Below, in pieces: positions 58,001-64,000 of a DNA stretch of 64,000 bases. The notes below the pieces were generated by a model that did no database searches, was not told the DNA's origin, and worked only from the letters and a program-made list of their open reading frames with translations. Made by a program: the position numbers and the translations under genes. How positions within the stretch are numbered: position 1 is the first letter of the stretch; each line of letters starts with the position of its first letter. This DNA is from Trichosphaerium sp. ATCC 40318 (taxonomy: Eukaryota; Protista; Tubulinea), in NCBI GenBank assembly GCA_038496445.1, contig JALMLS010000065.1, forward strand, positions 62,001 through 126,000, written 5' to 3'.

Positions 58001-59760
58001 AAGGTGACACTACTGTCTCATATAAACTATATGCTTTCGGTGACTCTACACCTGTCACTGGTCTAAGGTATACATTCCCTGAAGAATTCATAGCTATAGC
58101 ACCTTTCGAAACACGTGAGTTTACAATAACTGGAGCAAGATTAGATCTTGATGAGTATGATTTCGAAGGTACATGATTTCTTTTACAAAACACTTTGGAA
58201 GATACTAATCTTTGCTTGGATATAAAATGGGTTCTCACAGTTGACTGTGAGTATAGTTACTGCAAAAATAGTTTATGGCTACAACCCAACTTACCTACAC
58301 AGTCTTCAGTAAGTGTAGGTGTGAGATTCCGAGTACCTTGTACGTTGTATCACAGCACCACTTTTGTACATTTTTGATCTTTTTTTAAACCGTTTTGGTT
58401 TAAGGTATGGCTCTCGCTTGGGCAGATGATAACAGATATGTTGTAAATATTAACTCTGAAGATAATCTCGTTATTCAAGTTGAGAATAAGAGGTTCCATA
58501 CTGATCCATGGGATCTTGGGACTTACCCTAATACATTAAAATTCGAGTATAGATCAAGTACAAGCTGTACGTTTTTAAACATTGTTTTTTACCTTACAGT
58601 TTTTTGTTGCAGTAGGTAACTGGAGAGAAGCATCCAGAGATGCACAAATAGAAATAAGCATTGATAGCAATGGAATCCTGTATTACTCATGGGATGTATC
58701 GTCATTTGGTGATGATGTTTATGAACTTCGTTGCACTGCCGTAAGCTAGTCTCTTCTATGTGGAATATTTTTAATCTAATACGACCTAGGATTGTCTTAC
58801 TGAATCTATTACAGTCAGTGATCGTTTGCTTTATGTTGATAGACGTCCTATCACTGTATATGGTGCTCCGGAACCTTCAGGTAAATACTTTGGATTATCT
58901 AATTTTTTACTAACGTAATGTAGACGGAGTGTTCACTCCAGAGAAAGTTTTGAGTGCTAACTTCAATAAAGAGTTAGACTGCGCGCGTTCAGTTGAAGAA
59001 GGTACCGTTGAGATTTATGTTGATGGTAGCAGTGATAAACTTGATGGATTCACTTGGAAGTGCTACCAACAAACAGTAAGTTTTGTTTATTGCTGAGAGC
59101 CTGATAGCTTACCGTATTAAAATAGATAACAATCGAGCCAACTATTAGTTTTAAATGGAGCACTTACACTGGTAAAACAATATCAGCTCATGTGACTGGT
59201 ATTGTTGACAACGCTGGAAATGTTATGGGCACGCAAATAATTTGTTGTAGTTTTTTTCAACTTCAACCTATTGTTTATTTTCCGCTCATTTCTTCTTCAT
59301 AGATACCCAAGCAACCTGGAGGTTCACTATTGAAGATAAAGAATGTGTAACAGTTGATGCAACACTAGAGTTTACATTAGCTGAATCTAGCAACCTAACT
59401 GACTCTGAAATGGTTTCAGAATTAGTTGCTTCTTTTGGTTTTATTGCTGATACAGTCAAGAGTTATGATGTATCGGATGATGAACTTACTATAGTTTTAA
59501 CAAACTCTGCTGATACTTGTGATCTTGTTACTGAACTAGAAAAGTTCTCAGCGGCCATGGATGCTACTGATGCTTCTGAAAGACCTTCCTTTATTAATTG
59601 GGATGAGGAAGGTTCTTTCGGATTTCAATCAAATGTTGCTTCTTATGAAGATGATAAAGAACTTGATGAATGGATATCTTGGGTATCTGTTGTAGGAGTA
59701 TCAGGTATAATTGTTGTAATTTTACTGGTCGGAGTAATTGTATGGGCAGTGCGTCAATAA
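55006..59760 (+). CDS. Large multi-exon Ig-like/beta-sandwich surface protein with C-terminal TM; contains apparent frameshifts
   Basis: Signal-like YTLLLVAITLLGQNWA; FHLSDPEPLDYF..GEDPTYGTPVF..GESSCIHEQGT; DRRPITVYGAPEPSDG...FNKELDC; TM WISWVSVVGVSGIIVVILLVGVIVWAV. Confidence 0.65.
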
Positions 59761-59859
59761 AAACGGAAATAAGAAAAAAAAACCCCAAAAAACTGAAGCG
59801 GTTTTTGAATTGAAGTTTTTGCTAAGGTTTATTGATGTTCACGTGTTGTGATTTTTTGT

Positions 59860-62800
59860 CTAATCTGTTCCTCTATCCAAGTCATACTTGTTCCAAGTAT
59901 TACGTGTTATTGGTAAGCAACCATTACAACAAGCTAACTTTGTATGACAGTGACATTCTATTGTTTTCTTATCTCTGTTAGATGCCCATCCGTTTCTTGC
60001 TGAAATATCATCTGAACAATCTGGATCATTTGCTGCTGCTCTTGCGCATTCTGACATGAAGAACTGCGTGTGGAAAGGCGCTTTTCTTCCGTTTACTATG
60101 AGTTTCTTGTGGCATTGTTTATGTGTATCACCAGGGCAAGAGTGATGTCTCTTACCGCCGCCTCTATTTGACCACCATCCATTTGTTCCATCGCATGTTT
60201 TACCAGCATCTTTGTTGACGAGTTTAGGTGGGTTGTATGGTCCTCTTGTGATTGGTTCTCTATCGCAGTTTATACAGTCTTCGCTTAGTGGCCATTTAGG
60301 TACACGTGTATCGTTCGAGTTGAGCTCAGCGGCATTACAATCGATGCATCTTTCTCCATGTCTCCAAGGTATTTTTTCTGGTCTTTTTGGTGGGTCGAAT
60401 CCTGGGAACTGTCGGCTGTTTTCTCGTAGGTAGCAAGTTGCGTGATACGCTGGATCTCCTTCGTATGCTCTTTCTGTTCTTCCAAACGTGTCTGAAGGAT
60501 TACGAGCGTTAACACCGAAACAAACATAGACGTCTTTTGGATCTTCAGCCAAAGCGTTAAAGTCGAAGTTGTCAGTGCATTCTTTTGGCAATAGCCCAGC
60601 TTGCTCGGCCCATCTGTTTTCACCTACAGATAGAGGCATGACAGCGATACCATGGCACCAATTAGCACTAGCTGGACATTTACGCTCACAAATGCTCAAA
60701 TCATCGTAAACTCGTGAACACTCTTAAAAAAAAGAAACGTCAGATACAAATCAAGTGATATTTTAGGACAAAAAAGCGCGTACCAATGCTGTATTTAAAA
60801 TCAGGAAAGTAACAATGATCGATACGCCTAAGTTTGTATCAGTTAGAAGTCGTTCTGTGGTGTTTATAAAAAAGGTATCAAGACGTACGAGAAAGCGCCT
60901 GGGTCTGGGTTCGTTCCATAAACATGTTCAACTTGATCAGTAACATAGTCGACGTCCACACAATCTCTGTATCCTCTCCATAGCCAATGAACAATGTATT
61001 GACCTGTACCGGCTCTTCCAGGGATTTTAATCATTGCCATATCACCGTCATTAGGTCTATGAACCAAGTGTTCAACACGAAGCATTGATTCAACCCAAGG
61101 CATATCAGGATTGAAATACTCAGCATAGTTGTCTTGATGGTACTGACTCTTGTATTTAAAGAAGCTAGCATCATCTGCCCATAATCCGAAAGCATCTGGA
61201 CGTGGTATGAAGTCTGGTGAAGTCTTTGGTATCACAGGTTCGTAATAACTCTTATGGCTTTCGAAGCTACTTCCTCTGTTCTTGAATTGTCGATGATAAA
61301 TTGGTATTTGTTGGAGTGAAGGTGCTTCGTTAAAGTATTTTGCTATGGAGGCTTTATCATGGAATTTAAGTTTATCTGCATCCTTTTCGTGTACTACGAT
61401 GAAGTACGACCAATCTTGATGACCTGTAGCCCATTCAAGCTGGAAAAGTTGATTGAGTCCAACTTGAACATGTGGCATAACCTGGTTCTTTGCTGGACAA
61501 GGTGAGATCGTGCTAGCATGTCTAGAACGTGATCTAGACCAAAACCAATTGTGTCCATGAGCTCCCTGTGTCAGGGCAGCGAGTGCAATGATGACAATCA
61601 AAAGTAAAGGAGTCGATGATTTGTGTTTGAGAGCTGAACCAACAGCGATAAGTAAACCGGCCAATAGAGATGCTGATGGTCGGGTTGCAGGTGAGTTTGC
61701 TCCTCTGTTTTGCGTACCACCTGATGGAGGTGTTGTAACTGGTAGCTGGCTACTCTCTGGAGGTTGTGGGGCAAGGGTAGTCTTAAGACATTTGCAGAAA
61801 CGGCGCCTAAAATAAAACCAATTAGGATTGTGCTAAGCAAAGAAGTTCTTACCCATCAGCTTGATGATTGCTTGTGGCATCACATTCTACAGGAGCAGGT
61901 GGTCCAAGTCTATTAGATGTGCATCTGGTATCGTCATAGTAACAGAATCCATTGTCGGAGATTGAAGCTCCGATTGCTCCACAAGCGCTCAAGTATGGTT
62001 TCTTACAAAGAAAACCAGCTGGTGTGATTTCTTCGTCAATTCTGTTTGGACTGTTGACACGTTCTATTGAAACAACATCACATAAAAGACTCTCTTCGGC
62101 ACATCTATCAGTACATGATTGGCCAACCTGAAGACAAAGGTCACATACAACAGCACAGAAAGTATGTTCAATAATCTTTCAAAAAAAAAAATCACGTGCC
62201 TTAGATTCAAACCAAGTTTGTTCTGGTTTAGGGTCTGTGGACTCCCCTAAACGTAGATCGCCATTAATGTTTGGAGTATAGAATGCGCCAGTGTTAGCGT
62301 CTCCTTGTTTGATTAAAGCACGGAAGAAAACAGCGCCAGTTCCAGCAGGAGGTGCTTGCCACTTGAATGTAACTTTGAGAGGCTTTAATACAGCGTTTAG
62401 ATGCATTAGACTTTGTCGGCAAACATGAGTATCAGTCCAAGGTAATTGAAACAATGCTAAAGACGGATATAAGCAAACGGAGTAATAAAATTGTTTGCTG
62501 CTGAGAGCAAAGATTCGAAAAAACGAAAAAAAATGCAAAAAAAACAAACCTGGAAATTCTGTTCTTAATTTCCATTCTCCAACTCTGTTCTTTGCTGCAT
62601 CTTCAGCGTAAATTAAGATACCTCGATACTTTGCTGTATAATCGTTGACAAGAACGGTAATATCAATGATACTGTCGGGTGTGTAGCGTTGAAGTTTTCG
62701 TTTTTCTGGACCCGCAAAAACTGAGTATTTGTCTGTTCTCTTTACTTTATCTGCCCAATACATAATAGGTCGAGGCACAGTTTGGCAAAGCAAACGATCC

Positions 62801-62970
62801 ACGCGGTTATTTCTTACTACCCAATCAGAAGGATCACACCCCCAGTGGGTGGCTGTAGCGTCACAAGAGAAAACTGAAACAGGGTTTGCATTTGAAGCTC
62901 CATGTGCACGTGATAAAAATAAAACGACTAGCGCTAGCGTTGTAAAACGTAATATGTCAGAGCATGCCAT
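59860..62970 (-). CDS. Reeler domain + Cys-rich domain + hydrophobic pair + LPMO-like domain + Cys-rich tail (putative polyprotein)
   Basis: Signal MACSDILRFTTLALVVLFLSRAHG; Reeler motifs YRGILIYA and FKWQAPPAGTGAVFFRALIK; continuous frame via introns 62128-62199 and about 61808-61851 into AHG-HNW...WATGH...GQYIVHWLWRGYRDCVDV. Confidence 0.75.
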
Positions 62971-64000
62971 CGTCTAAACGAGAAATGAGTACATTTAGTC
63001 TGTGTACAAAAAAAGAGCGGGCTGCGGGCAAACAAAATCTTGTTTTGAAATAAAAAAAGACAACATAATGTATCTCATTCTTTGTAGTGATGCCCTTAAT
63101 CACGTGATTTAAAACATTTTGAAGAAATGGTTGCGGTACTTTTCGGCCTAGAAAGGATAAATACGTACCTGCGTCTGCTCTTGATGAACGTATCGTCAGG
63201 AAGTGATGCGTTTGTGTATTGAGCTCTGTCTGAATTAATAAAACTGTCGAACAAAAAATGTGTTTTTACTTTTTTTGTTCCCTGGGAAAGCGGGACGCTC
63301 CATCCCTTATGATAAACCAAACCACAGTTTAAATATCAAATATTTTATGTTATCTGCTAGCGCATTATCTTCTTACTAGCGTTAAAATTACATGAGCTAA
63401 ACAATTGAAGATACCTTTTCACACCCTATTTAAACTAATCTGCGTACGTACTGCAACTATACCGAGTGCTGTTTTAACTTGTGTTATGCTATTAGCTATT
63501 ACAGGATGTGTGCCGTTTCGATAAACGTGTCAGTATGATAAAAGTAGCGGGAACATTCAAGACAAAGAGTTCTTAGGTCTTTTCACGTATGAATTTGTGA
63601 ACTAACTGCACAATTACCACAGCGGGTTTTTTTGGTAAAACTGAGGTAACTAAACGCTAAACAAGCGTTTTGCGATACTGTTGATCTAAAAGGAGACTGT
63701 AAAAAAGTTACTTCAAGTTCGTTTGCATCTCGAATAATGAAGGCTACAAACATCGCACTTGCGAATGAAAAGGTACCAGAAACTTTCAGTTTTTGGTACA
63801 CATATCGCGTATGTTTGAAAAAATGCACCTGCTTCAGTGCCATTTTATTTTTTTTCATATATCGCGTACCCTAAACAATACATATGATAGATTCAATAGC
63901 GCAACTTGCGTGAAGTATTGATGAAGTCTCCTTGATTTTTTTTTTTGAAAATAGCTAGTACTATTTGTTAGGAAAACAGGAGAAGCACCATTTGTGTAAA

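Follow-up and report, generated by a model that had tools for sequence, protein, structure and literature searches.

We analysed a stretch of 64,000 nucleotides from Trichosphaerium sp. ATCC 40318 (contig JALMLS010000065.1; referred to below as the window, with all coordinates given as window positions) and found a six-exon gene on the minus strand at 62970-59860, whose joined exons give one open frame of 2,778 nt uninterrupted by a stop and a protein of 925 amino acids. That this is one gene with one mRNA is close to certain, and the gene probably encodes a two-part secretory precursor which is cut to release a candidate copper histidine-brace protein with His403 as its first residue.

In the mechanism we propose, an N-terminal signal peptide, cut after Gly24, would carry the Reeler-like and Cys-rich domains into the lumen of the endoplasmic reticulum (ER). 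The first hydrophobic segment (residues 362-377) would halt transfer, the five-residue basic loop KHKSS would remain cytosolic, and the second hydrophobic segment (residues 383-402) would restart translocation as an internal signal peptide, with ER signal peptidase cleaving after AHG402. Product one would be a membrane-held Reeler protein, hairpin-anchored or perhaps later anchored by glycosylphosphatidylinositol (GPI); product two would be a free secreted protein of 523 amino acids with His403 as residue 1, combining a beta-sandwich like that of the lytic polysaccharide monooxygenases (LPMOs) with a Cys-rich region and a PAN/apple-like module. His403, through its free amino group and its side chain, and His447 would form its copper histidine brace, with Tyr597 beneath. 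The chain would accordingly pass from the lumen through a membrane hairpin with a cytosolic basic loop and back to the lumen, the hairpin retaining the Reeler half. All features of a polyprotein layout (N-terminal signal, stop-transfer segment, positive loop and a second hydrophobic segment with a signal-peptidase site) are present in the sequence, and a maturation by signal peptidase resembling that of viral polyproteins is a strongly supported inference.

Gene model and transcripts

The region 63400-59500 was examined in three frames. The initial annotation had read a single spliced frame leading from a signal peptide through a Reeler-like domain, a Cys-rich domain and a Pro/Ser/Thr linker to a pair of hydrophobic segments and HNWFWSRSR, and the 925-residue translation agrees with it throughout: the His codon lies at 61553-61551, AHG closes both the N-terminal signal and the internal segment, and both the second His in WATGH (His447, 61421-61419) and GQYIVHWLWRGYRDCVDV (Tyr597, 60971-60969) are present. 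The further claim that no ATG separates the Cys-rich exons from the internal segment holds in frame, the spliced open reading frame (ORF) lacking any Met between residues 158 and 428; out of frame, ATGs do occur, for example in a 54-residue ORF at 61394-61558. Four of the coding introns are of the GT-AG type and 46-93 nt long, and the boundaries of the remaining one (62199-62128; AAG/GC...AG/GTT) are required by the reading frame.

Seven public RNA runs contain part of the window and four of these were compared with 59700-63100. Each of the five coding introns was spliced out in at least one contig. One contig from run X1 (record 2; 1,862 nt) covers 60958-61805, 61852-62126, 62199-62456 and 62550-62975 with three introns spliced out, and is continuous from the start codon through the hydrophobic pair into the His domain, with nothing excised at the hairpin; a second (record 1; 1,039 nt) covers 59827-60722, 60784-60826 and 60888-60987, with the last two introns spliced out. 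The RNA sequence from run X7 does not differ from the window and likewise shows splicing, with the joint 60826/60888. The transcript start lies upstream of 63200. The single mRNA which had been proposed to cross the hairpin junction is thus seen in the continuous spliced 1,862-nt contig, and a separate start was not seen, though contigs cannot reveal starts.

Compared to the window, the X1 sequence has 37 listed letter differences (approximately 98-99% identity). The coding differences comprise 28 synonymous and 9 non-synonymous changes scattered over both halves of the ORF, and both halves are under purifying selection. X1 and X2 share a 3-nt in-frame insertion (GCA on the plus strand) at 62926 within the N-terminal signal peptide, and the X1 internal signal peptide carries T397P and I390L, leaving the AHG/H site unaltered. 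Ten of the thirteen X1 pieces fall in a band of 90-95% identity and look like paralogues. X1 and X2 also contain contigs of higher depth (to ~150) which match only the conserved stretches 60954-61067 and 62072-62121 and then diverge; their probable source is paralogues with stronger expression at other places in the genome. No paralogue of the gene was found within the window.

Relatives of the HNW domain

We used the 221 residues starting at His403 (the HNW domain, after its first three residues) as a query in a HMMER scan of 1.84 billion cluster representatives (50%-identity clusters), which returned relatives in 394 clusters at E ≤ 1e-3 and in 192 at E ≤ 1e-10. Among the best 150 of the 394, the alignment begins at query residue 1 in 122, and all of these start with HNW apart from a single HQW and a single HNY. 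By the position of the His, the 122 divide into 79 with it at 200 or beyond (internal relatives), 35 with it at 45 or earlier behind a hydrophobic leader started by Met (N-terminal form) and 8 with it in between, which look like 5'-truncated contigs.

All relatives with an organism name are protists and are annotated as hypothetical or uncharacterised. The named members are Flabellula baltica (Amoebozoa; two fused proteins), the chlorarachniophytes Lotharella globosa and Amorphochlora amoebiformis, Phyllostaurus siculus (Acantharea) and one Tara Oceans gene; this is a protist family which has so far been found in Amoebozoa and Rhizaria and is abundant in marine metatranscriptomes. Among the relatives listed, no precomputed Pfam family, those of LPMOs included, falls on the HNW domain. 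A homologue search with profile A1 found only unannotated relatives of 356-455 amino acids, and a word-indexed homologue search with the 221-residue domain found nothing within its length window.

There is evidence that both forms are real. The fused relative P0001 (976 amino acids) occupies positions 46-2976 of a 2,994-nt, transcript-sized contig, and the ORF of the N-terminal relative P0005 is found on three metatranscriptome contigs, one of which (L001) has an in-frame stop before MLKFIVLALFANVKA/HNW. A maximum-likelihood tree built from 70 domains mixes the internal form with the N-terminal one, and its well-supported branches force at least six switches. The two kinds of signal therefore appear to be interchangeable ways to precede the His domain, which is the strongest argument that the internal signal is also cut. 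One relative, P0096 (Amorphochlora amoebiformis, NCBI gene model), starts with a hairpin-like M...GGLSLLVL-RKSG-...ILSILLCVATPVSA/HNW; this gene model may lack upstream Reeler exons.

Hydrophobic hairpin and internal signal-peptidase site

The spliced translation of the internal stretch reads ...GANSPATRPSASLLAGLLIAVGSAL-KHKSS-TPLLLIVIIALAALTQGAHG/HNWFWSRSR. Hydropathy revealed just three hydrophobic stretches in the whole protein, at residues 3-20, 361-379 and 380-402. In the 80 chains made up of the window protein and the 79 internal relatives, two hydrophobic cores precede the His in 67, with median lengths of 13 and 14 residues, and the gap between them (median 6 residues) has a net positive charge in 61 of these 67.

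We applied the (-3,-1) rule for signal peptidase, allowing A, G or S at -1 and A, V, S, T, C or G at -3. It is satisfied immediately before the His in 79/79 internal relatives, compared to a background of 10.8% of positions in the same proteins, and in all but two of the 35 N-terminal relatives, so the cut site which had been placed at AHG is a property kept across the family. Residue -1 of the internal relatives is Ala in 67, Gly in 6 and Ser in 6, and their 79 sites use 42 different tripeptides; such conservation of the property and not of the tripeptide is the signature of a signal-peptidase site. Both halves of the protein are also Cys-rich, which fits both lying outside the cytosol. Cleavage before His403 is judged probable.

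Fold and candidate copper site

The conservation alignment consists of 70 HNW domains with ~27-42% identity to the window. Six columns are invariant (H1, N2, R9, H45, Y73 and Y195, numbered from His403), of which H45 is the His of WATGH (His447) and Y195 the Tyr of GY.DC.DV (Tyr597). Near-invariant columns include W3, P18, H28, W192, G194, D197 and D200, with D197 and D200 at least 90% conserved. The first His, the second His and the Tyr picked out in the initial annotation are thus invariant in 70 diverged relatives.

An AF2 model of the domain made with this alignment (predicted local distance difference test, pLDDT, 93.1; predicted template-modelling score, pTM, 0.90) is a beta-sandwich with a helical insert, in which Y195 opens the last strand. 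An exhaustive VIA-align comparison against 48,161 representatives gave as best matches the X325 protein LaX325 (6ibh; Z 8.1, 126 residues aligned), TdAA15 (5msz; Z 7.8) and AA13 (4opb; Z 6.7), with AA10, AA11, AA9 and AA16 at approximately 6. LPMO and LPMO-like chains fill 12 of the top 20 rows; in the LPMO-type rows the range on the model starts at residue 1 throughout, as does that on the matched chain where the entry uses mature numbering. The LPMO- or X325-like fold that had been suggested for the chain starting at HNW is thus supported by matches of moderate strength, from residue 1. Re-scoring of Foldseek's top 1,000 chains gave the same picture with the addition of viral fusolins. A shape search of the ESM Atlas gave template-modelling scores below 0.45, with two LPMO_10 clusters highest, and the language-model features of the domain lie nearest to a bacterial "polysaccharide monooxygenase" cluster (0.90) and a haptophyte LPMO_10 cluster (0.89).

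We assign the fold because the concentration of LPMO families at the top of the ranking, the N-terminal register and the His-His-Tyr triad are taken together. A copper histidine brace at His403/His447 is rather likely, at a somewhat lower confidence than cleavage. The Tyr and the two Asp residues are all conserved here, while X325 has an Asp ligand and no shown activity, so a copper histidine-brace protein is better supported than a polysaccharide monooxygenase. The released product would be either an oxidative enzyme or a copper-binding or copper-transfer protein of the X325 type; true LPMO activity is considered less likely than not.

Alternative readings

Several points weigh against a cleaved precursor with a copper-binding second product. 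The (-3,-1) site was judged by the rule and hydropathy alone. Truncation of contigs or gene models may account for some of the N-terminal relatives (for example P0062, P0030 and P0096), so that the figure of six switches leans high. The RNA contigs do not reveal RNA starts or ends, which leaves room for an additional shorter transcript, although such a transcript is not needed and, judging from the reading frame, could supply no start codon. With regard to the fold, Foldseek with the HNW-domain model found nothing in the PDB at E ≤ 1e-3 and only weak immunoglobulin (Ig)-like rows, and Z values of 6-8 are middling, a Z of 7-8 being, in the tool's own warning, the typical best score for models without a true match. 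The HNW domain had no Pfam match at E ≤ 1 except to an unrelated phage family, no NCBIfam match at E ≤ 10 and no match in the PDB when searched by sequence and by the A1 profile. The best fold match, X325, is also not a known enzyme, while D197 and D200 are conserved at 90% or more.

The alternative which survives best is a variant of the two-part precursor in which the first half, once cut, goes to the GPI transamidase, GANS-PATRPS-ASLLAGLLIAVGSAL being a GPI signal. A GPI-like pattern of GANS, PATRPS and a 16-residue hydrophobic stretch is indeed present, the first hydrophobic core is, at a median of 13 residues, a short one, a Ser/Ala/Gly/Pro-rich stretch precedes it in the window and in relatives, and X325, the best fold match, belongs to a GPI-anchored family. 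Classical GPI signals end with a hydrophobic tail, however, and hydrophilic extensions block anchoring. In the window protein 25 residues (the basic loop and the second helix) would still trail the would-be GPI tail after the proposed cut, and the pattern is not C-terminal even then. We give this variant a low probability.

It is also possible, with a lower probability, that the precursor is cleaved but bears no copper brace, the HNW start serving another metal, a structural cap or receptor binding and the resemblance to LPMOs reflecting a shared Ig-like sandwich. This would be consistent with Z values which the tool calls common, the lack of a significant Foldseek match, the absence of a sequence link to known LPMO families in the Pfam, NCBIfam and PDB searches, and the invariant N2, R9 and Y73, which are not known to have a counterpart in LPMOs. 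It sits poorly with the ranking of 48,161 representatives, in which LPMO and LPMO-like chains hold 12 of the first 20 rows and the model range starts at residue 1, with an invariant first His, second His and last-strand Tyr in a Y-x-D-C-x-D-V motif, and with language-model features which point independently to LPMO-type clusters.

Less probable again is an uncleaved two-pass protein, in which the hairpin would be permanent, both ectodomains would stay on one chain and His403 would never become N-terminal, leaving the His domain as a binding or non-copper module. The hairpin is conserved and its short hydrophobic cores could pair in the membrane, but the plain end of a membrane helix needs no rule such as the small residues kept at -1 and -3 in 79/79 relatives while the tripeptide varies. 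The same domain also lies directly behind ordinary N-terminal signal peptides in 35 clusters, with the two forms swapping repeatedly on the tree, and the alignments start at the His in 122 of the 150 listed relatives.

Least of all do we expect separate expression, in which the His half, with a signal peptide of its own, would arise from an internal promoter, an alternative transcript or internal initiation, the long ORF being incidental. In its favour, 43 of the 79 internal relatives have at least one Met among the 28 residues preceding the His, and contigs cannot reveal RNA starts. On the other side, 36 have no such Met, the window gene has no in-frame ATG between residues 158 and 428, at least 79 diverged clusters, as well as transcript-sized contigs, keep an open frame through the junction, and a spliced contig spans it.

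Two further candidates were rejected. One is a pair of adjacent genes or a trans-spliced operon, for which the sequence offers no stop codon, in-frame ATG or in-frame acceptor, while the continuous spliced contig spans the junction. The other is an artefact of assembly or reading frame; against it stand the identity of X7 with the window, the ~98-99% identity of X1, whose changes are mostly synonymous, and a layout found again in hundreds of relatives.

Other domains of the precursor

The positions of all features are listed in Table 1. The Reeler call of the initial annotation stands mainly on homology, the window's own profile match being weak. PF02014 (Reeler) matched the window at E 0.0065 and 17.4 bits, below the cut-off of 21, and on exon 2 only. 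Residues 25-330 are homologous to 87 of 194 fetched proteins, with E down to 1e-72; the N-terminal halves of 27 of 79 relatives have a Pfam Reeler match (best E 4.3e-11), and the window's N-terminal half matches the Reeler-positive relatives P0176, P0017 and P0181 at E 1e-54 to 1e-58.

The Cys-rich domain that follows (61855-62127) weakly resembles the C-terminal 80-90 positions of Pfam Glyco_transf_18 (window E 0.06); four relatives (including P0045 and P0086) also match this family, with a best E of 1.3e-5 and every one under the gathering score. Extra domains were observed in the first half of fused relatives (P0045, P0059, P0086 and two unnamed members of alignment A2): a weak DOMON behind the Reeler in two, a plastocyanin/azurin-type Copper-bind in two (best E 1.1e-7) and a thrombospondin type 1 domain in one. 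WW domains were found in the C-terminal part of two fused relatives. The extra DOMON, Copper-bind, thrombospondin and WW domains are possible hints of redox or adhesion partners.

The model of the C-terminal region has a pLDDT of 71.7, with block-mean pLDDT of 66-94 over model residues 165-285. It is over these residues that the top 12 VIA-align rows all match PAN/apple domains (HGF N domain, HAI-1 MANEC, TgMIC4 and SML-2; Z 6.6-5.1); PAN/apple domains of the matched lectins and adhesins TgMIC4 and SML-2 bind carbohydrate or protein. No fold match was found in this comparison for the Cys-rich middle region (residues 608-803). Sequence and profile searches of the C-terminal region against Pfam, NCBIfam and PDB returned nothing useful, and no PAN/apple Pfam match. 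Conservation of the region extends to 58 fetched proteins, among them P0015 and P0108 with their N-terminal layout, and from these sequences the second cleavage product appears to exist elsewhere as its own gene.

Downstream of the gene is a convergent ORF of 116 amino acids at 59410-59760 on the plus strand, which combines an acidic body with a membrane helix at the C-terminus and ends ~100 nt from the gene's stop.

Table 1 Features of the gene and its predicted protein in window coordinates.
Feature	Position	Strand	Basis
N-terminal signal peptide, residues 1-24, MACSDILRFTTLALVVLFLSRAHG/AS..., ending AHG/A	62899-62970	-	Translation, hydropathy
Reeler-like domain, residues 25-226	62200-62898	-	PF02014 on exon 2 and homology of N-terminal half
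Cys-rich domain, residues 227-326	61782-62127	-	Conserved Cys columns (alignment A2); weak match to C-terminal part of PF15024
Pro/Ser/Thr-rich linker, residues 327-361	61677-61781	-	Translation
First hydrophobic segment, SASLLAGLLIAVGSAL, residues 362-377, stop-transfer or GPI-signal-like	61629-61676	-	Hydropathy; equivalent in 67/80 chains
Basic loop KHKSS, residues 378-382	61614-61628	-	Translation; gap net positive in 61/67 chains
Second hydrophobic segment, putative internal signal peptide, TPLLLIVIIALAALTQGAHG, residues 383-402, Ala at -3 and Gly at -1	61554-61613	-	Translation; (-3,-1) rule
LPMO-like HNW domain, residues 403-607 (His403 61553-61551, His447 61421-61419, Tyr597 60971-60969)	60939-61553	-	Relatives, invariant residues, AF2 model, fold matches
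Cys-rich middle region, residues 608-803, conserved DHC motif	60229-60938	-	Alignments A3 and A4; low to moderate pLDDT
PAN/apple-like module, residues 804-924	59866-60228	-	Structural matches
Exons	62970-62550, 62456-62200, 62127-61853, 61806-60889, 60827-60784, 60722-59863	-	Sequence, spliced contigs
Start codon ATG	62970	-	Translation
Stop codon	59862-59860	-	Sequence; X1 and X7 contigs end ~33 nt downstream
5'-untranslated region (UTR) exon, 3' end	63169-63200	-	Loose end of X1 and X2 contigs at 62975 maps exactly to 63171-63200
5'-UTR intron, GT..AG, 195 nt	62974-63168	-	Contig loose end and sequence
Intron 1, inside Reeler-like domain	62457-62549	-	GT-AG
Intron 2, GC-AG, 72 nt	62128-62199	-	AAG/GCACGT...CTTCAG/GT; X1 record 2 joint 62126/62199, 3 ambiguous letters
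Intron 3, inside Cys-rich domain	61807-61852	-	GT-AG
Intron 4, inside Cys-rich middle region	60828-60888	-	GT-AG
Intron 5, inside Cys-rich middle region	60723-60783	-	GT-AG

Comparison with known systems

Polyprotein processing by signal peptidase and the unmasking of a histidine brace by removal of a signal peptide are both known, but in the open-access PMC and bioRxiv literature we found nothing which combines an LPMO or histidine brace with a Reeler domain, an internal signal peptide or a polyprotein, and did not find the combination described in a large protist family. In the family studied here (394 clusters), the signal peptide which exposes the brace His appears to be an internal one, placed midway along a precursor. 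If this is true, it would be a new LPMO-like family and a cellular counterpart of viral polyprotein processing, and searches for LPMO-type domains at protein N-termini alone would miss candidates. A functional coupling of the two products may be imagined, in which one membrane site would yield, in a fixed 1:1 ratio, a secreted copper oxidase and the Reeler protein tethered as its partner, the latter presenting substrate or feeding electrons or copper, as a protist-wide system for contact digestion or wall remodelling built on a new LPMO family whose active site would come into being through an internal signal-peptidase cut. In some relatives the Reeler partner is joined by DOMON-like or plastocyanin-like domains. 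This coupling is speculative and we would sooner expect it to be wrong than right.

The polyproteins of enveloped viruses (the glycoprotein precursors of flaviviruses, alphaviruses and bunyaviruses) alternate stop-transfer and signal segments and are cut on the lumenal side by the host signal peptidase into several proteins per chain. The window gene shares the alternating segments and the predicted lumenal site. Unlike these viruses, the family belongs to cellular, free-living protists, and the cut, besides separating two proteins, would give rise to an N-terminus that binds metal.

N-terminal signal peptides are present in all known LPMO sequences and the related histidine-brace classes, and their removal unmasks the amino terminus for copper (2023 review, PMC10952591). 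As in the LPMOs (CAZy AA9-AA11 and AA13-AA17), the product predicted here is a secreted beta-sandwich whose His would become the first residue after removal of a signal peptide, with a second conserved His and a conserved Tyr in the last strand; LPMOs, too, are often followed by binding modules. It differs in having no match to the LPMO families of Pfam (PF03067, PF03443 and the BIM1-like PF20238), to NCBIfam or to PDB sequences, in its HNW start and invariant Asn2, Arg9 and Tyr73, in a second His which lies merely 44 residues after the first, and in the unmasking signal peptide, which in most members of the family is internal and lies behind a Reeler protein.

The X325/Bim1 fungal copper proteins provide the top structural match (LaX325, 6ibh; Z 8.1 over 122-126 residues, both ranges from residue 1), and share with the window protein an N-terminal His brace in a small sandwich, as predicted here, and association with the membrane surface. 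In X325 an Asp carboxylate completes the copper site, and the protein is implicated in copper transport with no shown oxidative activity (PMC10952591). The window family has an invariant Tyr in addition to D197 and D200 (at least 90% conserved), so either type of site is possible, and LaX325 is only ~13% identical to the window domain. The tether differs as well: X325 carries a C-terminal GPI signal of its own as anchor, whereas the tethered part in the window gene would be the other half of the precursor.

The CYBDOM proteins (Reeler-DOMON-cytochrome b561; human SDR2/FRRS1, Drosophila CG8399) carry an extracellular N-terminal Reeler on a membrane-bound, redox-related protein (PMC10691727). 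The window gene likewise begins with a Reeler-like domain, and two relatives have a weak DOMON behind theirs, but it has no cytochrome b561 domain and no clear DOMON.

A parallel from a protist is that of the AA11-type LPMO candidates of Orciraptor agilis, which are predicted to be membrane-tethered and have been proposed for contact digestion of prey walls (bioRxiv 10.1101/2021.12.30.474559). In both cases LPMO-type proteins of a protist are predicted to stay at the cell surface. The signal peptide of the Orciraptor candidates is an ordinary N-terminal one, their membrane helix lies at the C-terminus of the same chain, and their His1/His63/Tyr135 site has been assigned to AA11 (bioRxiv 10.1101/2021.12.30.474559), whereas the window domain is not assignable to AA11 and the tether of the window gene would be a separate N-terminal partner.

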